Part shown: positions 1-18,100 of the stretch, piece after piece
Numbering within the stretch: position 1 is the stretch's first letter
Layout: each line of letters opens with the position of its first letter
Assembly (NCBI GenBank): GCA_905178155.1
Contig: CAJINV010000011.1
Location: 369,914 to 433,913 of the forward strand
Length of the DNA: 64,000 nucleotides
Origin: Amoebophrya sp. A120
Taxonomy: Eukaryota > Protista > Dinoflagellata
Direction of reading: 5' to 3'
Translations under genes and position numbers: made by a program
The notes under the pieces: model-generated
Told to the model about the DNA's origin: nothing
Database searches by the model: none
The model's input: only the letters and a program-made list of their open reading frames with translations

Positions 1-3000
1 GTGGTTGTTCCAGACACTTCGTGCAGCAGATCCAGCTTTTTCTGCAAAAGACCACCTCCCGGGTTGTTCCTTCCGTGCGAAGAAAAACCAGTAGTACAGC
101 CCGAATTGACTGTCTGGCGCACGAGTTTGTAATGGTTCACCATTCTGCTGGTTTTTTCAGAAAGAACTTTTGCGTGATTCATCGACGAGTCCGGACAATC
201 CTCGTGCCTCGGAGCATCTGGTTTTGCGGGAGAGGTTACACGACCAGCGGCAGTGGTTGAACCGATTTTCGCTTTGTTAGTTTCATCGTCCCCGTCTTGT
301 TCGTCCAGGTGGTCCTCATCTTCAACAACATCTTCACCAGCGGTGGAGCGCAAATCTTGTTCGGGAGAAGGAGCACCTGGTCCTCCTCGTCGCCCACAAA
401 AACGATCTTCATTCGTCGGAACAACGATTCTGGAAGTCGTCGGAATCAGGGAAGAAGATAAATGATGTAACAGATCGCAATAAACGTCCGTGATTTTTCT
501 TTCGTTTTGTTTCTCCTCCAGAAAAGAAGCGGAATATCCCGGGTCCAGTTCGTAAACTAAATGTTGTACGTTCTTGCTCATCGTGGTCTTTTGCTCGAAT
601 AAGTTGTGCATCTTTGTTCCGCGGTTCTTTTTCGTCTTTTGCTCGACAAATTCATCCACGTCGCTGCTGCCCGTCGTCTCGGAATCCGGATCAAAGTTCT
701 TCGGCTTTCGCCACTTCCACGCGAGCTGTTGGGGCGGACAGATCGGCTTGGTTTTGTTCAATATTTGCTCCATTTTTCTTGGCGAGGAAGAGGACGTCGA
801 CCTGGTCGAAGATATACTCCGGCTTCGCGTCGAACTCGTGGCCTGCTCGTCTACTTCATGACCCACCTTTTCGGAAAACAGGTTTAACTTCTCGCCGTCG
901 GGATTATAACGCCTGACTTTGTCAAACACCGAATTCTTGGCGTGCTTATTCGGCCGGCCCAAGGCTTTGTGTTTCTTGAATTCCGCGTCACAGATAACTG
1001 CTCTCTGCAACTGCGCACACTTGATGGTGGTTGAACGTTTATTATTGGGTGGGACAACTGCTGGATCGGGATCCACTGGAACTGATTTAACATCTTTGTT
1101 GAGTGTAGTATTTTGATGTTTCTGGCTTACCAGCAGCTTGTTGTTCACTGCGGTAGTAGTGGAAGCTCCTGCTGCATTCCCTGTCGTGGTCGATGCAGCG
1201 TTCTTGTTCTTAGGAGGTGGCAGCATCACAGTTTTCGCCGCTGATGTCTTCGTAGTTCCAGAAGCTACCACTTTTACTGCAGCACCTCCCGCTGCCCCTA
1301 CCGTATTATTACCGGCCGCCGCGGGCTTTTTTGCTTCGCCGCGCAGGTTCGGGAGCTTCTTCAAAAATTGCGCCCCGGCAAGCTGCGGCTGCCCCGCCGG
1401 GGGTTTCTGTTTAGAAGTATTTCCAGCTTGTTTTTTTACCGTGGCTCCTGCTGCGGCTCCTGCCTGTCGACGCTGCGTCCGTACGCCGGCAGCTGTCTTT
1501 CCCGCCAAGGTAGTTGGACTGCCCACGGCTTTCTGGATGTCTTCTTTCGTGCACTTTTTCCCGTTTTTCACCAAATCGGCGAGGGCCGCGAGCTTGGCCG
1601 TTTGCGTTTCCTTCTTCGTCTGAGCCGCGCCGGTTTTCGCAGCGTCCCCATTTTTGATGCGCTCCGGGATGGGCAGGACGGTGCGAACGGCTGTACTTTT
1701 GGCGACAGTCGTATGATGTTGAGCATGCACTACGGGTCGCGCTCGCGCAGCTGTTGCACCAGCCAGTGCAAAACGGGAACGCAACAATCTGCGGAGTTCG
1801 TAGTCGTCTTCCTGGTGGCGAATGCAGGCGCGCCGTTTCTTAGGCGAATTCTGCAAAAACTTGGTTAACGCCAGCTGAGCCGCTTTCGGCGAGTTGCCGC
1901 CGTGTTCGTGCGGTTTCTTGTCCAAGAACCGGGGCTCTGTACGACCGGAAAAAAACTCGTCACCGAAGAGAAAGCTGTTTAAGCTCGGCCAGTGGGGGAC
2001 TCCCGAGTTGTCCACCTCCTCATCCAGGTTTTCTGGTGCGACGCACTCACGATCTTCCACTGCTTTCTCCATTTTTTCGAGAAAAGCTGGTAAAACTGAG
2101 AAAGTCTCAGCAATCTTGGCGACCGTGTGCTTTCGGCGATCGAGGAAATTAGCGGAGAGCTGCTTTTGGAGAGAAGCTTCGTCTTCAGGCTCATCTTTTC
2201 CAACAGTAGCTTCTTCTTCGGCGTTTTCTTTCTGGTCCACAGTGATTTTCGTCGTAGTTCTTTCCAGAGAGCTGGTTCCAACCTTATCATTCTGTGCTAT
2301 ATTCTCCTTGATGTTGCCCGAAGGTTTCATATCCTCCTTCTTTCCATCTCGCACGACGTCCTCAAGCTGAGTCACATCAACTTCTGCTGAAATGACCTTG
2401 CTCGTTTTGCCTTCGTCTACCTCCAACAACTTCTTCTCGCCCAGCAAGTCTTCTGCATCAACGTGATCGCCGGAGTTCTTGCGCAAGAAGACTGCGCCAG
2501 TCTTCTCTTCCACTGTCACTTTCTGTTTCTCCATCTCCTCACCTTCTACCACAGTCGTGGTGGTCCCTAACGCTTTAAAAACTTTGTCCGCAAACTGGCT
2601 CCAAATCCGTTGTTGCATCTTCTGCCTTGTTCCCTGCCTCACTTGCAGAAGTGAAGTTGAGACATTGTCACGGGCTTCCAGTCCGCGTTTCTTGCTCCGC
2701 GGACCGACCGTGCCGTGTACCTTCGTGGTTGACACATCCGCCGGTTCCAGATCGCCGGTCTTACTTTTCGAACTTTCTCTCACAACAATAGCCCCGGAAG
2801 TAGTTGTACTATCCTGAATGTCGGAAAGCTTTGTCGCAGTAGCGTAATCGATAATTGTTGGCTTCGTCCCTCGCCGCACCTTTTGCACCGGGGTTGGAAC
2901 GGTTTGCACGAAAGATATGTCGCAGTGCTGTCGGGAATAGGAGTTCAATCTCGCAAGAAGAGTGTTCTTCCCACAATTTTTGACAAACTTCATCAACTTC

Positions 3001-3858
3001 GAATGCTGTTTCGCCGAGGGCAGTTCTAGTTGCGGGATGATGAAAGTACTGGTATTACAATTCTCCACGAACTCTTCCATCTTGGCGAACCCGTATTTAC
3101 TTGGGACCATTTTTTCCTTCGCGAATTCAGAAATTTCCTTCTTCCGCCGATTGATGTCCTTGAAGATGTTGGTCAACATCTTCTTCTTCCTCGCGTGTGA
3201 CGCCCCTCCAGCACAGAACAGATTCTGACTCGCAGAAGAGGAAGAGTTCTTGGAAGTTGTAGCTGAAAAAGCAGGTGAAAGCGATGCGAACCCGTGCGCG
3301 ATTTGAAACTGGTGGAAGATGTTCGCGATGTCTGCGTCTGAAAAGTTCGCGGAAAGGTACGTGGCCAGGTGGGAGATGAACGCATCCGCGTTGTGCTTGT
3401 CGTACAGGAACAGGTAGCGAGTATTGTCATCCGTCCGGAACATTTTTTTGTCCAACCCGAATAATTTCAGCAGCTCCTTGATGCAGTGTTTCTTCTCGGC
3501 AATGAGCTTGAGCTCCTGTTGGTGGTGGCTCTCAGTCTCATAGTTATCATCTTCAAGTGAAGTTGTAAAATCTTCGTTCTTGTTACCCTCTGCGAGGGTC
3601 GTCGGAAAATCTTCGTCGTCGTCCTTGGCGTGCTGACTAACATCAAAACCACCTGCGGTCAACCTTCTCCGCTTCCTCGCCGGTCCGGTCACAATCGTAT
3701 CCCGAGCGACGTGGTCTACCTCCTTTATTCCCTCTTTATTGCTGTCGTCCACCAGCTGCGCGGCCTTTAAATCCCCCAAGCGCCGCAACAAGTCTACTGC
3801 TTTTCGAGCGGACAAAGCTTCCTCGTCATCGTCTTGGAGATGAAGAGTTTTGCCCTCT
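1..3858 (-). CDS. 3' part of a long exon of host gene B (unknown, low-complexity charged protein); runs off the left edge
   Basis: Manual translation (EGKTLHLQDDDEEALSARKAVDLL...; ...KKLDLLHEVSGTT) gives the same open frame at both ends. The ORF track has no terminated ORF in this frame. It joins in frame to ...TTMKMTTE (15167+) when the retroelement is removed. Confidence 0.8.
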
Positions 3859-4306
3859 GTCCGCCCACCTGTGCATTTATTTTATTCAGTTACTTTGCAC
3901 GCATACATTGTTTCATCATGCTGGGGATCCGCATCTGCCCACTCATTTCTATCCATCCGAGTAGAAAAGGGAATCAATTCATCCAGCGAACAAGATTTGA
4001 ATTTAGCTCGGGCTCGCGCGTGCGAGTTACGCCATGGCAGCGGTTTTATTTTTGAGAAGCCCTTGCACAGTGGTGTCAACACAAACGCGCATGTCCAAAG
4101 TAGTCCAACGTGTCCACGTTCAAGATGTGAGTCCAGCCTCCTTTCTTGGAGTTAGTGGTCGCTAAAAGCTACTTCGAAAAACCCACAGCGCGGGCCGCGC
4201 ACGCGGCCCGGGACCCTAGTGACCCCGCTAAAAGCAGTTATCGAGAACTCGTTCTCGTATTGCTCAAAACCTTTCCTCACACCCGTGCATAGCACGCACG
4301 GCGGCT
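3857..4306 (-). repeat. Split direct repeat B2 (450 bp, 3' terminus of element)
   Basis: Near-identical to 7059-7508 (about 4 mismatches by eye). Minus strand carries AATAAAATAAAT about 20-30 nt before the end. Confidence 0.95.
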
Positions 4307-4420
4307 GTGTGGGGTGGTGTGTGTTTTTCGGGTCAGAGACCTCAGGACTTCTCGAAAGTTTATTACCGTAGCTCGTGCTACTTCCTGCTAGTTCAGATTT
4401 CTCTGGTTAGCAGGTAGCGG

Positions 4421-6796
4421 CTAGTCCGCCTCACGAATTTGCAGTAGTTGTTTCATCGGCATGTTTGTCACCGGCCCTGCGAATTCCCGCTGCCAGTTTA
4501 TTAGCGGCGGCTTATCCATGGTCGGTTGCCACATGTCGATGGCCTGCTGCAGCTTGTCGCACCTTGAAAAGGGGTCCGCGCAGTTCAGCTCGCTCTTCAC
4601 GTACTCGCACCACGAGCGGCAGCTGTATTCGTGGCACCACATCGCTGCCCGCGTACATATGTTCGTTGTCAGCAGCGAGTTGGCCGAGCATTTCACCGCG
4701 GCGCACAGCTCGCCGGTGTTGTCCACTCGGGTGAACGTTACCGAGTGGCTGAGCTCGTGTCGCCACGTCAGCTGCGCCACCCGGATCATCATCGCCTCGT
4801 AGTGTTCGATTGTGAGCGGGTGTTTGTAGTGCTCGCTCACGTCCGGGAAGTCGTACGTGATTGCCCGGATCTGGCCTGTTCCGGTTATTAGCAGCGCCCC
4901 GCCGCATGGTCCGCCCGCCTTGGAGCCGTTGCTGCTGGCGTCCAGGTTCAGCCAGTTTGTTTTCCCGTCGTGCACCTGTGGTTTTAGCACCAGGGGCTTC
5001 TGGTTTTTCAGCACTACCTGCACGCCGCGCAGGAGCACGGCCAGCTTGCGGCGCCGCGCTTTGTCCAGCACCCAGGCGTCGAACCGCTCGTCCGATCCCG
5101 TCCAGTCATATACTCCGCGGAATATTTCACTGCCTGCGCGGTAGGCGGAGTTGCAGACGATGAAGTTGGCTATGCCCAGCACGCGCTGCAGGTCCTTCAT
5201 TGTCAGGCCTTGGCCCGCTTCGCACTTCTCGACGCAATGTTTCGTTTGTGTTAACGCCCTGTTCATGGAGTCCGCCGTCGGTTCAACTGTGATTTTGTTC
5301 ATCTCTCTTCTCCAGAAGTAGTTGATGCCCAGCGCTTTGATGGGGTTGTGCTCACAGCTGTTTTGCGACGCTCCGGGCTTGTCGCTTATGACCAGCCCCA
5401 GCGTGCGCGCCATCTGGCGGTAGAGTTCTCGGCTAAGCATCAGCCCTTCTCGGTCCAGGGCCATGTAGTAGCCGTCGTCGATGTATATCACCGCTACCGC
5501 GTAGAAGTGGATCAAAATCGACATGCACAGCTCCGCGACCCTGCACCACGATGGAACGCTGTGCAGGTTGCCCATGTTCAGCACCAGCGCCAAGAAGTAC
5601 TGGTAGGACATGGTGTGGCTTGACCACGCTGCTACCGGGTTGTGCTCCGGTATCTCACACCCGACCTGGTGGTAGGCGCCTTTGTAGTCCTCGCTGCCCA
5701 GTTCCACCAGCGGTTGTTTCGCGGTGTTGTGCGGTGTCTTTTTTATCGAGTTGTGCGCGTAGCGCGCTTCCTTTTTCACCCTGCTCACGTAGTCGCGTCC
5801 CGTCTTTTCGCCAAAGAAGGAGTCGCTGTGCGTCTGCTTTCTGTTGCGGAATTGTTCCAGGTGCTGCTGCATTTGCTCATAGACCTCCTTTTTCGAGGTG
5901 GTTGCGGGCATTCTGCAGCAGGCTTTTTCCTGTCCGACCGGTGCCATCATGGCCTGCGTCAGTTCCTGTATGACGCGGGTTCCGTAGAGCTGCAGTTTCT
6001 CCAGCAGCACCGAGTGCATGTTCTTCCTGCGCTCGTCCACGATTGGTCGTATTTTCCGAATTTCCTCTTTCGGAAATATATACGCGGGCACGCAGTGGAG
6101 CTGGTGCTCACTGATTTCCATGTTATGCCCGCGCTTGACCATCTGCATTTGTTCTTCTAGCACCGCGTCCAGTAGCTTGTCTGAGAACCCCTTAGGCTTC
6201 AGTTTGCGCAGCGTCACTCCGGCCTCGAAGATCGCGTCGATCTGTTCTTGTTCCAGCGGTTGCTTGGTTTCGTCGAGGCCCCACACGTTGGACTCGGTCT
6301 GGTTCCCGATGGTGGGGAAGCCCTTCAAGATCTGCTCTGGCAGCTTCTTGTCCGGGTGCCCGATCATCGCAGTCAAACGCCGCATCGCCGGTACGTTCCG
6401 CACCTGCCCGCTCTCGCTGACCAGCACGCGTTGCAGGTGCTTGGGCGCGTGTTCGCGTACCAGCTGGAGTGCCTCGCTCTTGGTCTCCAGCTCGATCTCC
6501 TTCAGTATTTCGATTCCTCTTCGCAGGTGGGCTTTCCACCTGCCGGGGTGCTGTTTACAGAGCTTTGCGTTTCTGTAAAGCTCCTCCCTGATGGTCTTGA
6601 CCGCTCGGTCCTCTGCGATGCAGGCCTGTACGTAGCAGATGGCTTCGTGCGCCTGCACCTTGAGCTCCTCTGCCTCCGTCCAGTTCGCCGACGCGTACTG
6701 CATCTGTGCGGCCACCGGCGCTTCCGGTGGCGGTAGCTGCAGCTCTGCCGAGCTGTAGCCGAACCCACCATGCTTAGCGCGCTTAGCACGCGGCAT
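4421..6796 (-). CDS. Reverse transcriptase-RNase H of the YR retrotransposon
   Basis: RT motifs IRPIVDERRKN, SEDYKGAYHQV, LNMGNLHS, VIYIDDG (YxDD, ~5474-5485), KALGINY. DIRS-type RNase H motifs LNLDASS, IEHYEA, RVDNT, YVKSELNCADPFSR. Likely ATG at 6796 (MPRAKRAK), just after repeat A2; the frame is open to 6964. Confidence 0.93.
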   Translation of the reverse strand: MPRAKRAKHGGFGYSSAELQLPPPEAPVAAQMQYASANWTEAEELKVQAHEAICYVQACIAEDRAVKTIREELYRNAKLCKQHPGRWKAHLRRGIEILKEIELETKSEALQLVREHAPKHLQRVLVSESGQVRNVPAMRRLTAMIGHPDKKLPEQILKGFPTIGNQTESNVWGLDETKQPLEQEQIDAIFEAGVTLRKLKPKGFSDKLLDAVLEEQMQMVKRGHNMEISEHQLHCVPAYIFPKEEIRKIRPIVDERRKNMHSVLLEKLQLYGTRVIQELTQAMMAPVGQEKACCRMPATTSKKEVYEQMQQHLEQFRNRKQTHSDSFFGEKTGRDYVSRVKKEARYAHNSIKKTPHNTAKQPLVELGSEDYKGAYHQVGCEIPEHNPVAAWSSHTMSYQYFLALVLNMGNLHSVPSWCRVAELCMSILIHFYAVAVIYIDDGYYMALDREGLMLSRELYRQMARTLGLVISDKPGASQNSCEHNPIKALGINYFWRREMNKITVEPTADSMNRALTQTKHCVEKCEAGQGLTMKDLQRVLGIANFIVCNSAYRAGSEIFRGVYDWTGSDERFDAWVLDKARRRKLAVLLRGVQVVLKNQKPLVLKPQVHDGKTNWLNLDASSNGSKAGGPCGGALLITGTGQIRAITYDFPDVSEHYKHPLTIEHYEAMMIRVAQLTWRHELSHSVTFTRVDNTGELCAAVKCSANSLLTTNICTRAAMWCHEYSCRSWCEYVKSELNCADPFSRCDKLQQAIDMWQPTMDKPPLINWQREFAGPVTNMPMKQLLQIREAD

Positions 6797-6823
6797 CTGG
6801 GTGGCAGTTGGGGTGGTGGTGGG

Positions 6824-7060
6824 ACAAACTTCACGATGTTGCCGCGCCGCAACGTTCGCGAGGTTCCCCGAGCGGAAACACCAACTAACCAACAGCAGTG
6901 TGTTCATGTGGACATACGCGTTTGCGTTCGTTGTGCGTGCAAATATCGATCGATCGAATCTCACTGATTGCTATAAACCCGATTGCTACTGGGATGGAGT
7001 GCACTTATTCGAATTGCATTACAGACTATACCTGGCGGACATTGGCTCGTGGCGCAGGCT
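6824..7060 (-). repeat. Split direct repeat A2 (237 bp, internal)
   Basis: Near-identical to 14930-15166 (2 mismatches seen); abuts B1 at a shared CT (7059-7060). Confidence 0.95.
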
Positions 7061-7508
7061 GTCCGCCCACCTGTACATTTATTTTATTCAGTTACTTTGC
7101 ACGCATACATTGTTTCATCATGCTGGGGATCCGCATCTGCCCATTCATTTCTATCCATCCGAGTAGAAAAGGGAGCCAATTCATCCAGCGAACAAGATTT
7201 GAATTTAGCTCGGGCTCGCGCGTGCGAGTTACGCCATGGCAGCGGTTTTATTTTTGAGAAGCCCTTGCACAGTGGTGTCAACACAAACGCGCATGTCCAA
7301 AGTAGTCCAACGTGTCCACGTTCAAGATGTGAGTCCAGCCTCCTTTCTTGGAGTTAGTGGTCGCTAAAAGCTACTTCGAAAAACCCACAGCGCGGGCCGC
7401 GCACGCGGCCCGGGACCCTAGTGACCCCGCTAAAAGCAGTTATCGAGAACTCGTTCTCGTATTGCTCAAAACCTTTCCTCACACCCGTGCATAGCACGCA
7501 CGGCGGCT
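7059..7508 (-). repeat. Split direct repeat B1 (450 bp, internal)
   Basis: Near-identical to 3857-4306; begins ~26 nt after the YR stop codon. Confidence 0.95.
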
Positions 7509-7534
7509 TTCGCCATACGTGCCCGAAGCTCTGC

Positions 7535-9508
7535 TCACTGCATATCCTGGTCGTCGGCCTCCAGCTGCAGGTCTGCTTCTTTCGCCACACGTTTCCTGAC
7601 GACTTTGTCGCCGAGCGTGCGCTTGCACGGTGGAATTCGGAGGCGCTTCTTGTTGTTCACACCCTTGTGCTTTATTCCATCCACTTCGCAGTCACATGCC
7701 GGGCATATCTGCGTGCTGTGGATGTAGAAGATGCCTTGGTGGCAGTACATCTCGTCTTTCTGCGCCTTGCGTAGCACCGCCGCGGGTTTCCCCTTGTTCG
7801 GGATTAGTGCTCCCGCTTTTTGTTTCTTCTGCACCACCGGCTGTTTCGGAGGCTGCTTTACTGCCGGTTTTTTCTCCTGCCCCGCGGCGTTGTCGTCCTC
7901 TTTCTGAACCAGGTTTCTGTAAGCAGGTGGGAATGCTCCCGGCACTTTTACCCGCGGTTTCACGTCCAGCAGCTTCTTTTCCAGCGCCGTTCGCGGGTCC
8001 GGCCCCGGCTTCGGTGCGAGGAGCTTGTTTTTCTTGTTTGGCGGTGACAGCATCTCCATGTCCTCCGCTGTCAAGTCCGTTTTTTGTGCCACCTGCTTTT
8101 TCATCTCCCGTAGCCTCTTCGTTATGCCCGGGCACTGCTCCTCCAGTTCGGAGTCGTTTTCCGTAAGGCAGTCATCGATGCTGTTTTTTAGCAGTGGCGC
8201 CACGTTACGGCTGTAGAGGTGCCCCTTGGGCGGTCGTTCGTCGCCTTGCAGCGCGTACGGCCTGATGGACGAGAGCACCGGGCAGACAGCATCTGGAATG
8301 CTATCTTTCCACTTTTCGTAGTCGGCGCAGTAGCGGTTGTACGTGGCTAATTTTGTCCATCCGCGATCCATCATCCAGCTTGTCAAGTCGAATCTTGCGG
8401 CGTCGCTGGTCATCGCCCATCTGGCGTACAACGCCGCCGCCCTGCGTGGCGACTGCTGCGTCCAGCCGAGCCGACGCAGCAACGCGCGGCTTTCCGACGC
8501 TCTCGTGATTGTCTCGCTGCCGTTTCCCCGCATTTGTTTCGCGATCGGCAGGCCCAGTCGCGCGTGTTCCGGGTTGTGCAGGAGGCACCAGGTGCGGTTG
8601 ATCTGCTGTTTCTCCCCTGGCGGTCGCACCGCCAGGCCTCCGCCGAGGTGAGGTGGTTTTTGTAGTGGCACTGCATCGCGCAGCACCATCCGCTCCCCGG
8701 TCTGCATGAAGCAGTTGCATCCGATCATGATGTCCCTGCCCTGGAATTTTCGCACTTTATCTTTGCCGACCGTCACGCAGAGGACTTCCTGGCCGTTGTG
8801 GACGCGGCGTTTCACGTCCTCCTCATGTATCTCGTAGATGCTGCTGAAGCGCAGTCCGGTTTGGAGTGCGAAGCACATCTGCGTGAACTGGTTCGGATAC
8901 AGCAGCTGCGTGACTGCCGGTCGCAGAATTGCTGGTTTGGCTTTGTGCGCTTCATCGCACGTCGCCGCGCGCTGCACGTCCCGCCGTGCAGCCACCAGCT
9001 CCAGCATCTCGTATCCCCACGCCGGCGCGAGGACGTGCCGCGTACTGCCATCCGGTCCTTTCGGGGGTCGGATGCACCGCAGTATCACCTGTCCCAGTAT
9101 GCCGCTCGGGTCCTTCTGCCCCGACCTGGCGAGTGTGAGGCCGTACAACCTCAAGCGTTCCACTTCGATCGCGCCCGGGTATACCGGCGGGAATCTCTTT
9201 GCACACCATGCTAGGAACTGGCGGTAGTATTGTTCCCGTTTTTGTAGTGTTCCCGCGGCGTTGGCCAGCAGCCCCAGCTGGTAATCCTCCTCCTGCTGCA
9301 GTTCCATCGCCGCCTGGGCCTGTAGCAGGCCGGAGTACATCCCCGCCATGGTGGTCGCTGCTTGGTGCCCCACCGCGTACGTGGTTAGGAAGCCGGCTGT
9401 TACCACTGCTACGCTCCTCGTCGCCGTCGGTCCCGCTCGTTGGCCCGCTAGCACCACGAGGAGTAACGCAAACGCATGTACGACGTGACCTAGCATTTCA
9501 TCTTGCAC
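7535..9508 (-). CDS. Tyrosine recombinase of the retrotransposon
   Basis: Box I FALQTGLRFSSI (~8851), K in KDKVRK, QSPRR at the HxxR position (~8441-8460), box II DRGWTKLATYNRY. The true start may be a downstream Met. Confidence 0.85.
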   Translation of the reverse strand: MQDEMLGHVVHAFALLLVVLAGQRAGPTATRSVAVVTAGFLTTYAVGHQAATTMAGMYSGLLQAQAAMELQQEEDYQLGLLANAAGTLQKREQYYRQFLAWCAKRFPPVYPGAIEVERLRLYGLTLARSGQKDPSGILGQVILRCIRPPKGPDGSTRHVLAPAWGYEMLELVAARRDVQRAATCDEAHKAKPAILRPAVTQLLYPNQFTQMCFALQTGLRFSSIYEIHEEDVKRRVHNGQEVLCVTVGKDKVRKFQGRDIMIGCNCFMQTGERMVLRDAVPLQKPPHLGGGLAVRPPGEKQQINRTWCLLHNPEHARLGLPIAKQMRGNGSETITRASESRALLRRLGWTQQSPRRAAALYARWAMTSDAARFDLTSWMMDRGWTKLATYNRYCADYEKWKDSIPDAVCPVLSSIRPYALQGDERPPKGHLYSRNVAPLLKNSIDDCLTENDSELEEQCPGITKRLREMKKQVAQKTDLTAEDMEMLSPPNKKNKLLAPKPGPDPRTALEKKLLDVKPRVKVPGAFPPAYRNLVQKEDDNAAGQEKKPAVKQPPKQPVVQKKQKAGALIPNKGKPAAVLRKAQKDEMYCHQGIFYIHSTQICPACDCEVDGIKHKGVNNKKRLRIPPCKRTLGDKVVRKRVAKEADLQLEADDQDMQ

Positions 9509-10150
9509 GCAGCATCAACGATACGACAAGCCGCACAGCGCAGAACCAGAAGCATTCTCTCTCCGCTCTCTGTTCTGTTCTTCATGTCATATCCGCGCTA
9601 CATGCGTTTGGTAACAGCCCTACTCGTCTGGACCATTTCGGCGACTCTTCGGGTGGGTTTACGTGCGCGCGCACGCCCTTTTTTGATACATTTTCCGTTC
9701 CGCGAACATCAGCTTGCACCTCGCATTTTTATACTCACTACTCTAGACGCGGTGCCGGACCAGCATGCCTTCCTTCTTTTTTCCGTTTTTCAAATAGCAT
9801 GCTATTTCCTTTTCTTTTTTTTTTTTTTTTCACATTAGAAATTCCATAGTGCCCGTGGGACTTTTCCTTTTACATCTACCTGCGAACCGCAACAGCAACT
9901 CTAGAGTAGTAATTTTTAAAAATTTTTTGATGTTTTCCTCCAACTCCTCTTCATCGATTCCCCGGTGAGTCCTCGTTTTTTGGGGAGTCAAGCTCGACCC
10001 TACAGCGGAATTTAGTTGCTATTTCGTTGTTGTCGTCCTGCTGTTTTGTATTATTTGTTGCTCTCTAACCCTGTAGTTGCCTACAGGAGGTCGCTTTGCA
10101 GCTAATTGTTGTCTTTCCTCGTTTTCGTCAGCTGCTGTTCCCTTCGTTAT

Positions 10151-12790
10151 TTAGTTGTTTCCGCTCCGGCTCCCGGTGCTGTTCCTGCGGCCGGCACTGG
10201 GCGTGGGGTCGCGGAACTGCACTTTCTTTTCCTTGTTTTTCTTACCCGCTTTGTCCCCCATCCCGTCCGTCTGCCTGCAGTGCGACAGCAACACGTCTTT
10301 CCAGGTGACCTCGGTGCAGATCAGGTCTTCGAAGGGCGGGGAGCCTAAATCGCGGATGTTGACCACGTGGTGGAAGCGGCACTTGCCTTCGCCCCGGTTG
10401 CAGGCATTGCGTGCCGAATCGCGGCAGAAACAAGAGGGAGACCCTTGGTTTGATAACCAGGCGCTTTGTACTGGGCACGGTTGTACATACCCTTGTCCGG
10501 TCACCGTCCAGAAGACGTATTTGTTCAGCTTGGTATCCCATTGACCGAGCTCCTTGCACTTGGTGGCCAGCTTCCGCGAGTAGACCGGGTCTTGCTCGCT
10601 GGTGGGTCCCGCACACAGGGCTTCCACAGCCGCTTTCGTGATGGGTTCCTTTCCAGCCAGCGCTTCCTTCTGGTCCTGGTACCCCTTCTGCGGCTGCGGG
10701 TTGAGCGTGATCTGCCCCTTGTTGGGCTTAGGCCGCTTGTCCGTTTTTCCGCGCTTCGATTCGTGGTTCACTTCCTCGTCCTGCTGCTGTCCCAGGGGGT
10801 GCAGTCCCATCTGCTGCTGCTGCTGCTGCAGGTAGTTCAGGTTATCCGGGTAGTTCGTTCCCCCCACCTGCGTGTGCGTATTGTTCTGGTTTCGCCCACC
10901 GCCAGCATGCGGATACAGCGGCAGCAATGTGTGGCCGCCCGCGGAAGTGTCGTTGTTGTTGTAGCGCTTGTTGGACTTGCGTCCAAAAGCCTGTTTCCGC
11001 TGTTCAATCATCTCGACGATCATGTGCAGACCGTGGATCAACTGCGTAGCCACTTTTGTGGTGTCCGGTTTTTGTTTCATGGTCTGCACGGCCGGCGAGT
11101 ACCACTGCGAGATCAGAATCTCCGGGTTCACCTTACACAGGTGTACCGCAACTGGCACTACGTGAAACACCATGTGCGGCATCGTGATCGCATTCAACCG
11201 GTGTTTCACTGGTTCTAACATTTCCGCGGCTTCCGCTGGTCCCGTACCGTCGAGGACAGCAATCGCGAGCTTCGCGATCTCCGCCGTGACCGGAAAACGC
11301 GCCGGGTCGCGCACAAAGGTTTCCGTGATGCACACTTCCATGTGCGTGTCCAGCGGGCTCTGGTCCACCTGCCGTTTGAGCTGTAACAGCGAGGCCACGT
11401 TGATTGCTGTTAGCAAATCCCTGTCGAAGTCCGGCGACACTCTCTCGAGTGTGCGTTTTTGCACTTCCAGCATCACCTGCAGGCACCCCGTGGTCTCGTG
11501 GGTCGTCAGCCCTTTGCCAGATTTCCAGCCTGCGATGCTGAAGCAGCTGACTACGTTGCCGTTCGGGTTGATCAGCGTGTTCTGCGGTTTCGGCAGCGGT
11601 GTTGATGCGAGTTGGATGTCGCTCCACACCCCATTATCCCCCGCCAGCGCCATAGCAATGCGGGCGACCTCGCTTTGTTGTTCCGTACAGGTCTGGAGGA
11701 ATTTGTGCATAAAGCAATTTGGCTGTACGTGGATGTATTTCGAAATTTTTCGCAGCCTGGCAGCCCGATCGGTGTCGTCTTTGCAGCCTTGCAACGCGTT
11801 CGAGATGCTCTGGCTGTACATTTTCGATTTCAAGTCGCTGGCGCGGCTTCCCCAGACCGGCTCGGCCCAGGCGCCCGGCGTGTTCACCCACGGCTTTTTC
11901 TTCCACTCCGTCGCTGCTCCTTCGCGGATTCGCTGCGCCGGCGAAACGCCGTCCTCATCCGGCATTTCGCCCTGCAAGTTCACCCATCCATAGAGCTCGA
12001 AGTACATCCATGGCGAGTGGGGGTTGTCTCCCCGCGCATTGAAGTGTTCCTCTTCGCCCGTTCGCCATGGTCCCTCTGGCTCCTTGGCGGAGCGGTAGTT
12101 GACCGCGTTCGTGGTTTTGTTGGCGGAAACTTCTTCACGCTCGGTTTTCACCGCGGCTAAAATTTCCTCTTTCTGCTGCCGCATGGCTCGTGTCAACTGC
12201 TGGACGAAGTTCGGGACATTGACGTTTCCGTTGGCATCCCCCTGGAGGGCTTGGATGAGTGCGCCCATCCCGGCTTCATTTTCGCTCGCAGAAGATATCG
12301 TTGCCTGTTTCACCTTTGTCATGTCAGATTGTTCCGGCGGCGGCGGCGGCACGCCCGCCGATCCCCCAGCAAAGGCGATTCCACTGCCCGCTGCTGCGGC
12401 GCTGGGGGCGATAACAATCGTGCTCTTGGTTGTGGTGCTGCTCTGCACCCCTGCGGTGGTCGTCGTGCCCACGAACAGCTGCTGTCCGTTTGGCACGATG
12501 GCAAACGGGGAGGCCGTGTTCTCATTGTTCTGTTCGTCCGGCTGCGTAAAGCTGCCTCCGAGGCCCTGCTTTTCCGCCTCGGCGCCTGCGCTCACCTCCT
12601 GTTGTTCTTCTTCTTTTTCCCGTTCCAGCTGTTGTTCCTCCTCCAGCTTGCGTTGTTCCTCTCGGAGCTGTTCCACTTTGAGGCGTATTTCCTCTTTTTT
12701 GCGTTCGCGCTCAGCCTGCTGTTCCTGGCGCTGCAGTTTTTCTTCCTCCTCCAGTTTTTTCTTGCTTCTCCAGCGCGTCCTCCATTTCCT
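10151..12790 (-). CDS. Gag-like ORF, C-terminal part (coiled coil; CCCH zinc finger)
   Basis: ORF track 10151..12676; the frame is open upstream to ~12793. CRDSARNACNRGEGKCRFHH is a CCCH-type finger, as in Ngaro-like gags. Confidence 0.75.
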   Translation of the reverse strand, partial: RKWRTRWRSKKKLEEEEKLQRQEQQAERERKKEEIRLKVEQLREEQRKLEEEQQLEREKEEEQQEVSAGAEAEKQGLGGSFTQPDEQNNENTASPFAIVPNGQQLFVGTTTTAGVQSSTTTKSTIVIAPSAAAAGSGIAFAGGSAGVPPPPPEQSDMTKVKQATISSASENEAGMGALIQALQGDANGNVNVPNFVQQLTRAMRQQKEEILAAVKTEREEVSANKTTNAVNYRSAKEPEGPWRTGEEEHFNARGDNPHSPWMYFELYGWVNLQGEMPDEDGVSPAQRIREGAATEWKKKPWVNTPGAWAEPVWGSRASDLKSKMYSQSISNALQGCKDDTDRAARLRKISKYIHVQPNCFMHKFLQTCTEQQSEVARIAMALAGDNGVWSDIQLASTPLPKPQNTLINPNGNVVSCFSIAGWKSGKGLTTHETTGCLQVMLEVQKRTLERVSPDFDRDLLTAINVASLLQLKRQVDQSPLDTHMEVCITETFVRDPARFPVTAEIAKLAIAVLDGTGPAEAAEMLEPVKHRLNAITMPHMVFHVVPVAVHLCKVNPEILISQWYSPAVQTMKQKPDTTKVATQLIHGLHMIVEMIEQRKQAFGRKSNKRYNNNDTSAGGHTLLPLYPHAGGGRNQNNTHTQVGGTNYPDNLNYLQQQQQQMGLHPLGQQQDEEVNHESKRGKTDKRPKPNKGQITLNPQPQKGYQDQKEALAGKEPITKAAVEALCAGPTSEQDPVYSRKLATKCKELGQWDTKLNKYVFWTVTGQGYVQPCPVQSAWLSNQGSPSCFCRDSARNACNRGEGKCRFHHVVNIRDLGSPPFEDLICTEVTWKDVLLSHCRQTDGMGDKAGKKNKEKKVQFRDPTPSAGRRNSTGSRSGNN

Positions 12791-14039
12791 TTTTCACCAT
12801 GGCCTCGTGTTCCTCCTGCGTCGGCAGCGTATCCAGCGCGGTGTCTCGCGGCAGGAGCAGTTTGGAGAGACCATGCTCATCCGGGTACATGTCATTGAGG
12901 CCTTTTTCCTCAGGGTCGGCTAGCGACTTGATCTTGACCATGCCCTGATAGACCCGCTCTTTCAGCACGCGCTGCTCCATGTTGAAACGTTCCCGCTCCT
13001 TTTCTTTTTCAACGCGGTCTTGTTCCTCTTTTTCCTTTCTGATGCGTTCTTCCTCCTTCCGCTGCGCTTCCACGGCGTCCGCATCAGCCATTTGCTCAAG
13101 CATCTGCCGCTTCGCCTCCAGCTCCGACATCTGCTCTTCCGCCTTCTTTTTCCCTTCCTCGAGCAGCGACTCCATGGACTGGAGGTTCGACTCCTTGGGG
13201 TTAAGGTTTTTCTCGCGCTCCTGGAGTTCTTTTTCCTTCAACTGCTGCAGTTCCTTCGCGCGCTTCGCTCGCAGTTTTTCCTTCTCCAACCGCGCGAAGT
13301 ACTCCTCCATGCAGTCGTCTTCCTCGGAGTCGTTTTTGTCGTCTCCGAGGTCGCCGTCGTTTTTGTAGGTGAAGCACGCGCGGATGCGGACATCCCCTTC
13401 GTGGTTCGCCGTGAAGCAGATCGGCCCGTGGAAGCTGGTGTCGGGAACCTGCTGTGCCTGGTCGACAGCAGTGTCGATCCAGGTCTTCAACAGCTTGTCC
13501 TTTTTCATGCTTTTTACATCCGCCTCTTTCTTGACGTCGGCCTCCACCAGCAGTTTTTTCAGCTGCTTGACGTTGAGGTCACGCAGCAGCACCCAGGTGT
13601 CATCCGTGTTCTCGTCCAGCAGCGTGGTTTTGGCGAGACACAGCAGGATGCAGAACTTGTGGTGCAGTTTTCCGTTTACCACCCGTCCCGTGATGGTTCC
13701 CGTCACCGCCGGGTCGTTCACCGCCGAGCTCTTGTAGTAGTGGACGTCGTTTTCGCGCGGGAAGGCGAAGTTCGTTTTTCCCTCTCCGAGCTCGTTCACC
13801 CGCTGCTCCTGCAGCAGTTCCAGTGCGGCTGTCGTCATGTCGCCGTTTCCGAAGAGGATGGCTGCACGGTTCACCTGCTGTTTCTTCTCCGCGGTGGCCG
13901 CGTTGTACGCCGCGTACCACTTCTCCAGCACTTTCTTCACTCCGCGCGCAGCAGACAGGTCCGCCAGGCAGAACTGGAACAGTTCCTCCGCGGTCTGCGG
14001 CGCCGCGTTGCCGACCGGTCCTTCCGGGAATTTCAACAT
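12711..14039 (-). CDS. Gag-like ORF, N-terminal part (SAP/HeH-like motif, coiled coil)
   Basis: 442-aa ATG-initiated ORF; LRDLNVKQLKKLL...MKKDKLL resembles SAP/HeH. The E/K/Q coiled coil continues in the +1 frame. Confidence 0.7.
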   Translation of the reverse strand: MLKFPEGPVGNAAPQTAEELFQFCLADLSAARGVKKVLEKWYAAYNAATAEKKQQVNRAAILFGNGDMTTAALELLQEQRVNELGEGKTNFAFPRENDVHYYKSSAVNDPAVTGTITGRVVNGKLHHKFCILLCLAKTTLLDENTDDTWVLLRDLNVKQLKKLLVEADVKKEADVKSMKKDKLLKTWIDTAVDQAQQVPDTSFHGPICFTANHEGDVRIRACFTYKNDGDLGDDKNDSEEDDCMEEYFARLEKEKLRAKRAKELQQLKEKELQEREKNLNPKESNLQSMESLLEEGKKKAEEQMSELEAKRQMLEQMADADAVEAQRKEEERIRKEKEEQDRVEKEKERERFNMEQRVLKERVYQGMVKIKSLADPEEKGLNDMYPDEHGLSKLLLPRDTALDTLPTQEEHEAMVKKEMEDALEKQEKTGGGRKTAAPGTAG

Positions 14040-14929
14040 GGTTACAGCGTGGTGGTGTGTGTGCGGTGTTGAGGAAAGGTTTTAGAATTTAGGGTTAGCT
14101 TTGCTTGTTCGATGTTGTCTGCTCTTGGACTTTACAAAAACTCTTTGGCTTCTAGTTCTAGAACTAAGTGAGTTTTTATTCGCGTTTTAAAGTGGGTGTT
14201 AATACTCGCTAGAGTAAAAGTTTTTTGGTATCGACTTAACAGTCAGTACCTTCGGCCTGCGTTCGGTTGCGATTCAAACAGCTGCTTGTGGTTGGATCTG
14301 TGATCTACGTTTTCGCTCTTAGCATGCTCTATCTTCTATTCGTATACGTACTCGGTTTCTTCTGTCATGCTCCCTGTCATGCTTGCCCCTGTAATGCTCG
14401 GCATTGCCTCAACTGCCTCTATAGTTGTCTTACGTTCGCTATCGAGTTTCGATCTCGCACGCGCTCTTTCGATTTGATCTGATTTTTGATCGTGCACTTG
14501 CGTGCATGCCAACAAGGCATTTCCCACTAAGCTTGCCCAGACGCCCGGTGCCCGTGCTCAGCACACCGGCGCGTCTCGTCGGCCATTCGGAGTTCCGTGT
14601 TTTCCCTGGAGTTCACCATCAGAAGCGGCTCACCCAGAGGGCGCAAGTATGGCGTTATGCCGCCATCTAACCCTGGGGCCGAATCTGGCTGTCCCCCGGT
14701 GCCACCCGGGTTCCTGTGTTGCCGTTTACGACATGCGTTTGTATTTCCTGTGTCGGCCCGCTGTCGCGCCGCGGGTGGCCCCCGGCTCACTTTCGTGAGA
14801 CCGGGTTTGCCATTAAGCGAGCAACGCTTGCCGGCAGCCAGACACACACATCCGCGGGGGACGGCTCGTCCCCCCGATGCCCTCGGTGCCTTCCCCGTGC
14901 TGTTAGCGTACAAGCACGAGGAGGCAGGA

Positions 14930-15166
14930 ACAAACTTCACGATGTTGCCGCGCCGCAACGTTCGCGAGGTTCCCCGAGCGGAAACACCAACTAACCAACA
15001 GCAGTGTGTTCATGTGGACATACGCGTTTGCGTTCGTTGTGCGTGCAAATATCGATCGATCGAATCTCACTGATTGCTATAAACCCGATTGCTACTGGGA
15101 TGGAATGCACTTACTCGAATTGCATTACAGACTATACCTGGCGGACATTGGCTCGTGGCGCAGGCT
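14930..15166 (-). repeat. Split direct repeat A1 (237 bp, 5' terminus of element)
   Basis: Near-identical to 6824-7060; ends in CT next to the host exon. Confidence 0.95.
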
Positions 15167-18100
15167 TCTGTTGTCATCTTCATGGTCGTGCCCTCTTCAG
15201 GATGATTTTCAAGCTGAGGACAAGAAGCTGCTCCTGCACGACGTCGCCTGTTGACGACCCGCCTCGACGCGGCTCCTCCACCATCGCCACATGCATGTTC
15301 TGGGTTCAAAACGCGGTAAGAGGGACGAGCCTGGTATATTTTTCATACGTAGTGGACAGTTCAACATCTATCATGTACTTCGGATCGCGGGTTGTCGTTC
15401 TCGCAAATAGAAGCAGGTTTCTATTGATACTTACATTTCATGTTCTAGGTGGATGGTACAATTCTACAAGATAGATTTTCGTATAAAAATATTCGTATAT
15501 ACCTTCCGCTTCTCTACTTCCCCGATCGCCTTTTTCCAGAGCGCGTCGACCCCCTTACTGCCGGAAATCGTGTGCCACCGCACGCGCTTGCGCAAAAACA
15601 GCTTCTGCCTGTACTTTTCCTCCGGATCTTCTAATGGGTTTATCATGGATCCTGTACTTTCTCGACCTGCCTCGAGTTGGTCCACAACCATCTCAGTGTC
15701 CTCGCGTGGGTCCTCGTCCTCGTCGTCCCGCGGCACGACCTCCCGCTCGAAACTCAAGTACAGCTTTTCCGCCCCGGTCTCTGCACAGATCCCCCGACGC
15801 AGTTCCAGATTCTGGAAATAATCCAGAGCTTTATCCCCGACTTTATTCTGAAGATCTTCCCTGGTGTCGTTTTCGACATTTTCTGTCGCGATCATCAGTT
15901 TCTTTGTGCATTGGTCGAGCTGCAGCCGGCCGGTGAAGCTGTAGAGTAAACTTGTTTTTCCTCCGGCACAACGGTTGGAATAAAATTCCAAAAGTTTCCA
16001 CGGTTTCTGTTTTTCCCCGGAAAAAACCAGATTGTCCGGGCGGAGCGAAAACTCCCCGCAGTTTGGGAGGTGCAGATGGTACTTTTTCCGCCCATACGGC
16101 AGTCGGCACTGTCGCTCGCAGACCGTGCGCTCCAAGGGCGTGCCGTGCGAGGTACCAGTTTTGATGTCCGATAAAAAGTTATGTTCGAGGTGCTTCTTAA
16201 ACTCAGGATGGTCCCGAGCGTATTTTTGCGGGTCGAAAGAAGCGGGAGATGACGAGGAATATGGATCGCAAAAATGTCTGGGTCTGGAAGATTGCAACTT
16301 GTCATGCTAAATCCGAATTTTGGAGAAATCTGTGTTGCATGAGTGCCAAAAGCTGTCCCCTTTTGACCAATTTGAGAGGGAGTTTCTCATGCAGGAAAGG
16401 CATGATAGAGACCTCAAAGATTCTGTCATGCTGGGTCTCGCATTCCAGACCTAATGGGACATGGAAAACCTGCATCACAAATCTTGCATTCTTCCAGACC
16501 CAGACATTTTTGCAATGCATAAGGAAGAGCCTGGTTCAATGTTATCGTCCACAGTAACAAATCTCGCCAAGTTCTCCGCGAGCGTGTGTAGTTTAGAAGG
16601 TGTTGCACTACTTCCAGTTGTTCTCGTTTTATTTATTCCAGCCGAGGTTCCACTAGCTGCCATACTGTTGATGTTCATCTTCTCTTCGATAATGTGCAAA
16701 GCGGAAATCTCGCCCCGCATAGCGGTACACACGACGCCGCTGGAAAGGTGGTTCGTTGCTAACGGCTGTCGTTGTGCCATGGAAGACTTTAATACGTCAA
16801 GACCGTCGCAATTGCTGGTTTTCGTCGTGTTCTTCGCAGCAGTTGGTACCGACGCGGCCTTCAGGCACGGTAGGGAAATCTCCTGCCCATTTGGCAAGAT
16901 GGCTGCGCGTCTGTTGGAATCGACGCGGACTGCGATACCCGTCATCGCGCGAAGAAGCTTGCCGTACTGGGCAACGACCTGTATAATTTCATTGCGTCGG
17001 GTTGTTCCTTGTAACATTACGTGCTAACATGTCTGTTTCATTTTTTACGACAAAATCATTCAAGTTTGACTGTGAATAATCGTAGAAAGACGCATTTCCT
17101 TCACCATCTCTATGCCAAACACTACGGCACACTACGACTTCAAGCGTATTTATTTTGCTTCAAAATTACCACTTTGCGTGCACTTGTATCAGTCGCCAAT
17201 TTGGCTTTCAAAAACCGACTGTAAAATCCATCATACCCTCGTGTTTCATGAATATACAAATTCATAAAATCCACCATACCGTGGTGATTCAAGTCTTACG
17301 TATAATTTTTCACACATACTATAAAGATTTTTTTATCAACAACATTGCAAATCAAATCAAACGTCAAAGACGAATACAGTGTCGAATGCCTGTACAAAAA
17401 AACTACGTCTTAGCTTATACCTCCTCTCCGTCGCGGTGATGCAGCCCCGCCCAGGCGGGCAACGCAGGGAGCACACTGTTCATTGCAAGTACGTTCTTCA
17501 AGATCAGCTTTTTTTCCGCCCAACTTTCCTCCCAAAGCAACATCGGCAGCGGGTGGACAACAGAAGCCGGCACTAGTCCACCACGACCTTGTTTATTGCC
17601 CGTTGTAACTTTTCCCCCACGAGAACCACCAGCGAAATCCTGCAGTTTCACATTCCCGAGAGCTCGCACTTCCGCTTTTTCGTACAGCGATCCCGACACC
17701 CGGATTTTCTCCACGGAAACCCGCGTCCGGGTTGCGATCACAGTACAAACTTCCTCCACGGTGGGAAGGTCCCGCGCTGGGGGGAGCGGGGAAAGCGGTA
17801 GGGGGCAAAAATACAACTGCGGGTCGGAGTCCATCTTCTTCCCGGGACTACCATTTGGTCCTCGTGCAGCTGTGGGTCGCGGATTTTGAAAAACCTGAGC
17901 TGGTTTATTCATGGTCTCCTTGATGGTGGTCTCCTCGTGGTTTTTTACCTCCACAAACTCGACAGAAACTTTCGGTGGCTGGAACAACGCTTGCAGGACC
18001 GCCTGCTGGAAGTGCGTCTGGGCCGGCACGTGCAGAAAGATCTTCGCAGTTGGATCGTAGTACAACACGTGACTGTCAGGAGCTCCAGTGTAGTACGCCG

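Follow-up and report, generated by a model that had tools for sequence, protein, structure and literature searches.

A probably intact tyrosine recombinase retrotransposon in Amoebophrya sp. A120 with its reverse transcriptase/RNase H gene behind the internal repeat junction

The DNA analyzed here, referred to as the window, is a stretch of 64,000 nucleotides from the dinoflagellate Amoebophrya sp. A120 (contig CAJINV010000011.1, positions 369,914 to 433,913). It is likely that positions 3857 to 15166 of the window, on the minus strand, form an intact 11.3-kb tyrosine recombinase (YR) retrotransposon in which the reverse transcriptase/RNase H (RT/RH) gene lies behind the internal repeat junction, and which is probably still competent. 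All positions are window coordinates unless a contig is named; C-numbers are contigs of the host genome assembly, and F1, F2 and F3 are element families, the window copy belonging to F1.

A repeat search over the region 2500-17000, gapped blastn to extend the B repeat, and a list of open reading frames (ORFs) on the minus strand together give, in element orientation, the order A1, leader, ORF1, ORF2, YR, B1·A2, RT/RNase H, B2 (Table 1). This is the order read by a first-pass annotation of the window, except that its "gag" can be retained for ORF1 and ORF2 by position only. The two A repeats are 99% identical over 240 nt. The B repeat was detected by the repeat search as 3857-4156 matching 7059-7358, and the gapped alignment lengthens it to the ~450 nt of Table 1, at 99.1% identity. 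Because A2 adjoins B1, the internal B1·A2 is read as a copy of the circle junction. Comparison with a second copy of the element places the true ends one base inside the coordinates of the first-pass annotation, such that A begins GCCTGCG and B terminates GGCGGACA. The YR and RT ORFs were said to stop just before a B, and they do so, at 27 nt before B1 and 115 nt before B2, respectively.

Table 1. Features of the F1 element in the window, listed in element orientation
Feature	Position	Strand	Size and remarks
Whole element F1	3857..15166	-	11,310 nt; true ends probably 3858 and 15165
A1, 5' terminal repeat	14927..15166	-	240 nt; terminates GTTTGT(T/C)CC
Leader, A1 to ORF1	14040..14926	-	~890 nt
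ORF1	12711..14039	-	442 aa, Glu/Lys-rich
ORF2	10151..12676	-	841 aa; stop-to-stop 10154-12793, +1 frame relative to ORF1; Cys/His cluster 10367-10477
YR ORF	7535..9508	-	657 aa
B1, internal copy of the 3' repeat	7059..7508	-	~450 nt; AATAAA 30 nt and CAGGTG 10-15 nt from its end
A2, internal copy of the 5' repeat	6821..7060	-	adjoins B1
RT/RNase H ORF	4421..6796	-	791 aa from ATG 6796; frame open to 6964 inside A2 (847 aa)
B2, 3' terminal repeat	3857..4306	-	AATAAA at 3881-3886

The layout is not peculiar to the window copy. A genome-wide search found three F1 copies, namely that of the window, one at C5:3244641-3255948 and one from C5:5718978 onward. The first of the C5 copies matches element positions 2-11309 at 99.3% identity, uniformly over the whole 11.3 kb, and has the same layout within different flanks; in the second the B1/A2 stretch is a run of N, which makes the junction unreadable. 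A search for related loci beyond the genome returned the JACKZZ contig only: in this independent assembly (JACKZZ010005587.1) a copy of ~92% identity reads ORF2, YR, B1, A2, RT, B2 and then passes into unrelated flank. F2 (on C1 and C4) has an RT 45% identical to that of F1 and the same layout with an A of 149 nt and a B of 410 nt, and the similarity of its copies to each other begins at A1 and stops at B2. In F3 (on C10, C16 and C2), whose RT is ~31% identical, the element is 16.9 kb long with an A of 168 nt and a B of 488 nt, and RT/RH again lies between A2 and B2; in its C2 copy (72% identical) a B is found on both sides of RT. The RTs of the three families are 30-45% identical to one another, and the split-repeat structure A1...B1·A2...B2, with B1 adjoining A2, and the gene order gag-like, YR, RT/RH hold in F2 and F3 as well. 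In another organism, Amoebophrya AT5.2, the gene model P0012 joins a YR C terminus to an F3-like RT, which gives the order YR then RT. The central claim of the first-pass annotation, that the terminal B and the internal B/A junction enclose the whole RT/RH gene, is therefore borne out in three families and in an independent assembly. Copies with the ordinary layout, which that annotation had named as the evidence that would speak against it, did not appear: the further copies, JACKZZ, F2 and F3 all share the arrangement of the window.

That the layout arose in the assembly, or by one local rearrangement of an element with the ordinary structure A1-ORFs-B1A2B2, would be suggested by one thing, its unusual form, and we regard either as next to impossible. 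The repetition of the layout in further copies, in the independent assembly and in the two diverged families excludes a misassembly or a one-off event for practical purposes. In addition, short-read DNA unitigs recover the junction of A1 with the 5' flank of the window copy and the passage from A1 into the leader (B1/A2 is not among the pieces listed). Segmental duplication was considered as the source of the copies and is contradicted by the different flanks of the C5 and JACKZZ copies.

The F3 elements have features of their own. They lie at C10:963786-980644 (L020, L006, L013; 16.9 kb) and at C16:1031447-1051079, where the element reaches 19.6 kb with a ~6-kb internal duplication, and from A1 to B1 there are ~12.8 kb, with eight or more additional ORFs (170-920 aa) of no assigned function. 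What looks like a gap in the C16 copy is a run of N. The F3 RT ORF is broken between HSVPG and ACRVSE, in all three copies, by ~150 nt with GT...AG ends (L012:3020-3260, L013:2586-2830, and ~5650-5890 on the minus strand of L007), a stretch that varies in length from copy to copy and is not a multiple of three. It is most likely a spliceosomal-type intron kept in the genomic copies, from which it follows that the template RNA would be unspliced and the RT mRNA spliced. Distant YR-like matches to the YR profile of the clade (E 4e-9) are found at C28:53339-53839, C28:59311-59811 and C277:518-1018, the two on C28 being 5,972 nt apart.

The ORF at 4421-6796 is accepted as RT/RNase H on its motifs and on transitive profile matches. 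It contains the RT fingers motif FPKEE..IVDERRKN (6020-6076) and YIDD (5471-5485), followed by the RNase H motifs DAS (4931-4945), E (4790-4810), DN (4709-4726) and NCADPFSR (4562-4585). A profile of the RTs of the three families matches the fingers of HIV-1 RT at an expect value (E) of about 0.05, and it gathers 1,202 homologues at E ≤ 0.001 among 1.84 billion proteins. These homologues are mostly stand-alone proteins of 700-850 aa; several are recognized by Pfam as RVT_1 (31.2 bits, the cut-off being 29.6) or RVT_3, and some come from Amoebophrya AT5.2, others being found only in ENA, JGI/IMG and Logan assemblies. Homologue searches with the RT and with the YR alignment, run with a coarse word prefilter, returned near-identical JACKZZ proteins only. 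Among the look-alike RT clusters of the Atlas that have recorded taxa, most are from Euglenozoa. An AlphaFold model of the RT (nine sequences) had a predicted local distance difference test score (pLDDT) of 41 and was not used. The ORF ends ~45 aa past the last RNase H motif (NCADPFSR is residues 794-801 of 847), and for this reason we conclude that it has no methyltransferase domain. Judged by sequence, the clade is a deep-branching RT lineage, missed by Pfam, in the Syndiniales (host Amoebophrya sp. A120).

The 657-aa ORF is accepted as a tyrosine recombinase on conserved residues, its Atlas score and the pattern of its fold matches. The candidate catalytic residues are R in GLRFSS (8840-8857), K in KDKVRK (8747-8764), Q-x-x-R in QSPRR (8429-8455), W in RGW (8351-8368) and Y in TYNRY (8330-8344). 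In an alignment of the three families R (in GLR), K (in DKV), R (in H/Q-S-x-R-R), W (in RGW) and Y are invariant, and the fourth position is His or Gln, with His in F3. The Atlas score against Phage_integrase/ALOG clusters is 0.98. The structural model (pLDDT 48) was used solely for the pattern of its Foldseek matches, which consist almost entirely of Cre, XerH, XerA, lambda Int, SSV1 Int and topoisomerase IB, the best at E 0.03. A permissive Pfam search of the YR alignment gave weak ALOG matches only (0.023), and the YR profile matched nothing meaningful among PDB sequences.

No domain was recognized in ORF1 with Pfam, and it has no detectable homologue in F2. ORF2 also has no Pfam match and is homologous to the 836-aa ORF of F2 (22% identity, E 2e-19). 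The two frames overlap by ~80 nt (12714-12793) with ORF2 in the +1 frame, for which a programmed frameshift, an intron or independent initiation is possible. ORF2, YR and RT have evolved under purifying selection in F1 and F2, with ratios of nonsynonymous to synonymous substitution (dN/dS) of 0.08-0.25, that of ORF2 being 0.11. It is from this selection, together with the intact ORFs, that we consider the F1 element probably still competent.

A comparison with known retrotransposons shows which part of this arrangement is new. VIPER and TATE have the order gag, YR, RT/RH, with B1A2B2 past all of the ORFs (PMC6681497, PMC12278014), and the first-pass annotation was right to recall VIPER for its gene order. 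The Amoebophrya element shares with them a gag-like, YR, RT/RH order, split direct repeats, the lack of a methyltransferase domain and of a target-site duplication, and a host that uses spliced-leader trans-splicing. In VIPER/TATE, however, the YR and RT/RH ORFs overlap, all ORFs precede B1-A2-B2 and A2 and B2 are ~30 bp apart (SIRE), whereas here a stretch of 738 nt with B1·A2 in it separates YR from RT, and the A2-B2 interval of 2.5-3.3 kb includes the whole RT/RH gene. The likeness to VIPER described here is one of gene order and of the features just named; the Euglenozoa among the look-alike RT clusters are the sole phylogenetic lead.

The precedent for the two-interval layout is provided by nematode PAT (Pat1) and by Kangaroo, which carry YR in the A2-B2 interval, inverted in Kangaroo, and translocation of the internal repeats has been treated as a recurrent character change (PMC4157794). 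The premise of the first-pass annotation, that split-repeat elements keep all of their ORFs before B1-A2, was for this reason too strong. As in the Amoebophrya element, B1·A2 stands in Pat1 and Kangaroo between two genes, with a complete gene between A2 and B2, but the contents are reversed: there YR is behind the junction and RT, RH and methyltransferase before it, whereas here RT/RH is behind and YR before. The methyltransferase domain that follows RNase H in PAT is absent. Ngaro, with A1-[gag, RT/RH, YR]-B1A2B2 (PMC8547959), resembles the element in its split direct repeats, separate ORFs and lack of a methyltransferase domain, and differs in having YR last, all ORFs before the internal repeats and an RT that Pfam recognizes, which it does not for the element. 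The SymbioDIRS of Symbiodinium have an A-coding-B-A-B structure, an RT too divergent for the Pfam seed and, in some, a shuffled order of integrase and Pol (PMC5890265). They too have a dinoflagellate host, a YR ORF separate from Pol, A/B repeats and a Pfam-divergent RT; in contrast to the Amoebophrya element, their coding sequence is all before the internal repeats, and some have a Dnmt3 domain.

A DIRS1-like structure, in which the terminal repeats are inverted and a complementary region lies inside, does not apply, there being no inverted repeat pairs in 2500-17000. Nor is the element a long terminal repeat retrotransposon, as its two ends differ (A and B) and it has neither a target-site duplication nor an rve match. 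RT with RNase H, a tyrosine recombinase and the absence of a target-site duplication place it in the order DIRS sensu Wicker. What is new is RT/RH in the A2-B2 interval behind a VIPER-like order, stable within the clade; the presence of a gene in that interval was already known.

The genomic copies also record how the element moves. Genome-wide searches were made with A, B and RT of the three families and with the YR profile. The internal junction is readable in eight RT-bearing copies, all of which have B1 directly upstream of A2-RT, and 9/9 RT-bearing copies terminate in B2. The searches uncovered no RT-first copy, no solo A-RT-B and no intact solo A-gag-YR-B. Were each of eight insertions free to use either junction with equal chance, all would fall in one register with a probability of ~0.004, that is (1/2)^8, independence of the insertions being assumed. 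The single register of all readable copies indicates that the element moves as one A1-to-B2 unit. Of the first-pass interpretation, the YR retrotransposon with RT/RH in its second interval stands; the predicted circular permutations and separately mobile halves were not found in these searches. It appears that the two B/A junctions of the presumed circle are not equally used, or that recombination takes place at the junction to which the ends of the RNA give rise.

By this reading of one-unit movement, a full-length RNA from A1 to B2 would be reverse transcribed as a single unit, as proposed for other split-repeat YR elements, with the internal B1·A2 as the template that restores the ends and joins them into a circle. 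YR would then recombine the B/A junction with a purine-rich target without duplication. Both ends could be seen in six copies, whose flanks have no target-site duplication; on the 5' side the flanks are purine-rich, of GAA/GGA type. The 5' sides of the insertion sites, mostly purine-rich, end at the element in ...GACAACAGAA, ...GAAGAAAAAGAA, (GGA)n and ...GGAGGAGGCAGA (window 15167-15206 and 3817-3856, and other copies), and the last two or three flank bases are often the same as the last bases of B. This suggests that a short stretch of identity may guide recombination. Three motifs near the junction are common to all the families and are candidates for sites of recombinase action or processing: CAGGT(A/G), 10-21 nt short of where B ends; AGGTA, 24-30 nt inside A; and TTTGT, at the end of A. 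The B/A junction in F1 (GGCGGACA and TGTCCGCC, window 7045-7100) and in the C2 copy is flanked on both sides by an inverted repeat of 8 nt, a further candidate, which is significant in these two (35 and 6 of 5000 shuffles reached it, respectively); it is only 5 nt in F2 and in the C10 copy of F3, and we do not claim it as general.

Divergence between copies is not even along the element. When the window copy is compared with the JACKZZ copy, ORF2 and YR show ~0.33 synonymous differences per site and RT ~0.12, the change occurring close to the internal junction; the noncoding B1·A2 is 95-98% identical. F2 is a mosaic of another kind, the synonymous values of RT and of the gag-like ORF being alike and that of YR higher. 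The F2 values indicate that RT does not have an intrinsically low synonymous rate, and so the pattern points to recombination with breakpoints between genes.

One could see in this a segmented retroelement or cointegrate, in which A-gag-YR-B and A-RT-B are separately mobile, lie in tandem and reassort through two equivalent B/A junctions. The uneven divergence and the F2 mosaic would agree with it, as would the short A...B derivatives described below and an F2 remnant (C3:7236703-7237697) that consists of a YR C terminus and B with no A after it. We nevertheless consider a segmented element very improbable. The register is the same in 8/8 readable copies and 9/9 end in B2, solo halves and RT-first copies were not found, and copies at different loci are uniformly similar over 11.3 kb (99.3%). 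Mosaicism, moreover, is equally explained by recombination between co-packaged RNAs or between copies. Half-specific divergence would fit module exchange and ordinary retroelement recombination equally well. It is also conceivable, if unlikely, that the clade is a modular bipartite retroelement, in which A...B is the unit of expression and perhaps of exchange, an autonomous element has two such units, and the halves are reshuffled through the A/B repeats. A structural and integration unit and a replication unit would each be expressed as a separate mRNA, under 5' and 3' control regions that are the same in both. Such an arrangement would account for the 2.7-fold gap in synonymous divergence between the halves and, if true, would make the element a retrotransposon analogue of a segmented genome that is kept physically linked.

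The derivatives bear on the same question. Three F3 derivatives join A1 and some of the leader, across a deletion, to the 3' portion of B. In each of the three, A is followed by the leader of the A1 side rather than by RT, which argues against a segmented element. One F2 fragment has A1 and leader joined to the middle of YR, and there is an F2 unit of A, about 70 nt and B, apart from the YR C terminus with B that lacks a following A. In addition, the first 165 nt of the F2 B have matches of 73-78% identity at ~20 places, including C2:4030166-4030771, C2:1391566-1392098, C8:3292946-3293465 and C5:8631515-8632556; at four of these sites (C5:8631515, C2:4030166, C2:1392042 and C8:3293410) an A-like piece lies ~300-700 nt upstream. 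A separate, closer F2 A-B unit is found at C28:247265-247874. The short A...B units are possibly a nonautonomous family comparable to the SIRE of VIPER.

The position of RT/RH raises the matter of its expression. The gene lies more than 8 kb from the 5' end and behind two or three ORFs, and so most likely needs an mRNA of its own. Such an mRNA could start in A2, from an internal promoter, or could be produced by polyadenylation at B1 and spliced-leader trans-splicing at the YAG directly before the RT start, and we regard trans-splicing as a route equally good as an A2 promoter. Three RNA-seq runs yielded four reads (two pairs), all of which cross A1 into the leader, with a loose end at window 14900-14929; in the runs of possible-RNA contigs, none of the sampled element words was found.

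It is possible, and we advance it tentatively, that each A...B is a self-contained transcription unit, with A1 and A2 as promoters that include a 5' untranslated region and B1 and B2 as terminators, giving two mRNAs and no gag-pol fusion. The RT ATG (6796) is 24 nt past the end of A2, or 27 nt if A is taken to stop at its position 237, the point of difference between A1 and A2 in both the window copy and the C5 copy. The RT start is 21-28 nt past A2 in F1 and F3; more widely, a start codon within 0-28 nt follows A2 in F1 and F3 and, in F3, A1 as well. The YR and RT stops lie 27-230 nt before a B or just inside it, and AATAAA begins 30 nt before the B end in F1. The mostly stand-alone RT homologues also agree with two units, as does the conserved GT-AG intron of the F3 RT, by which the mRNA would be processed apart from the template RNA. 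The reads weigh on the other side, none starting in A2 or ending in B1. The first-pass figure of 28 nt from A2 to the RT ATG was close for F1 and is not conserved, the RT ATG of F2 being ~500 nt from A2; the AATAAA at the B end likewise holds for F1, and F2 and F3 lack it or have it out of place. Transposition as one unit demands a full-length RNA, which could not be made if B1 were a strong terminator, and in the dinoflagellate host trans-splicing would serve the same end with no need of a promoter.

In the other route a single primary transcript from A1 to B2 would be cut at B1·A2 as an intercistronic spacer, by polyadenylation at B1 and addition of a spliced leader at the YAG upstream of the RT ATG, with unprocessed RNA as the template. 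The spacer would be like those between host genes of dinoflagellates and of the kinetoplastid hosts of VIPER/TATE. As a complete account this is rather doubtful. A truncated dinoflagellate spliced-leader motif is found on at least 37.8% of Amoebophrya A120 transcripts (PMC7789003), and a pyrimidine-rich stretch ending in CAG or TAG occurs just after A2 in all three families (CCACCCAG before ATG, CGCCCTTAG before ATG and CGCCTTAG before AT). The Euglenozoa, as the nearest recorded taxa of the look-alike RT clusters, fit with it too. A spliced leader was seen on the element in none of the four RNA-seq reads, however, no relic of one was found in the window, and the acceptor motif is short and could be due to chance or be a cis-splice site.

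Several points weigh against the view of the element as an intact retrotransposon with its RT/RH behind the junction. The RT and YR assignments are built from motifs, transitive profile matches and models of low confidence (pLDDT 41 and 48). Direct searches were negative: Pfam gave no match for the four element ORFs or the flanking ORFs, and PDB sequence searches with single window proteins gave none of significance. None of the four RNA-seq reads falls on YR, B, A2-RT or RT, so that the full-length RNA, the RT mRNA and the processing sites are deduced. The distance from A2 to the RT start in F2, the restriction of a well-placed AATAAA to F1 and the search of the window for a spliced-leader relic, with 0 matches, also count here, as do the small numbers of copies (8-9 bearing RT, in three families).

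Downstream of the element, a 1,293-aa open frame (3-3881, minus strand) starts in the last 25 nt of B2 and reaches the window edge. It belongs to no Pfam family, with a weak TraG-D_C match only (E 0.02), and cannot be counted with the element, since other sequence flanks the remaining copies. An Rfam search matched no family.

YR retrotransposons are rare, little is understood of how they replicate, and the position of the internal circle junction is one of the few characters by which they are classified. The clade described here indicates that the junction can lie between YR and RT/RH and can be kept there across families with RTs only 30% identical. It follows that split-repeat replication can accommodate, or makes use of, an essential gene and several kilobases in the A2-B2 interval. 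The large RT family missed by Pfam, with its 1,202 homologues, should aid the annotation of transposable elements in Syndiniales genomes. The element is a test case for whether both B/A junctions of the presumed circle can be used, the genomic record here being of only one. It is also a test case for the expression of a downstream pol gene without a gag-pol fusion, in which an internal promoter may be set against spliced-leader trans-splicing.

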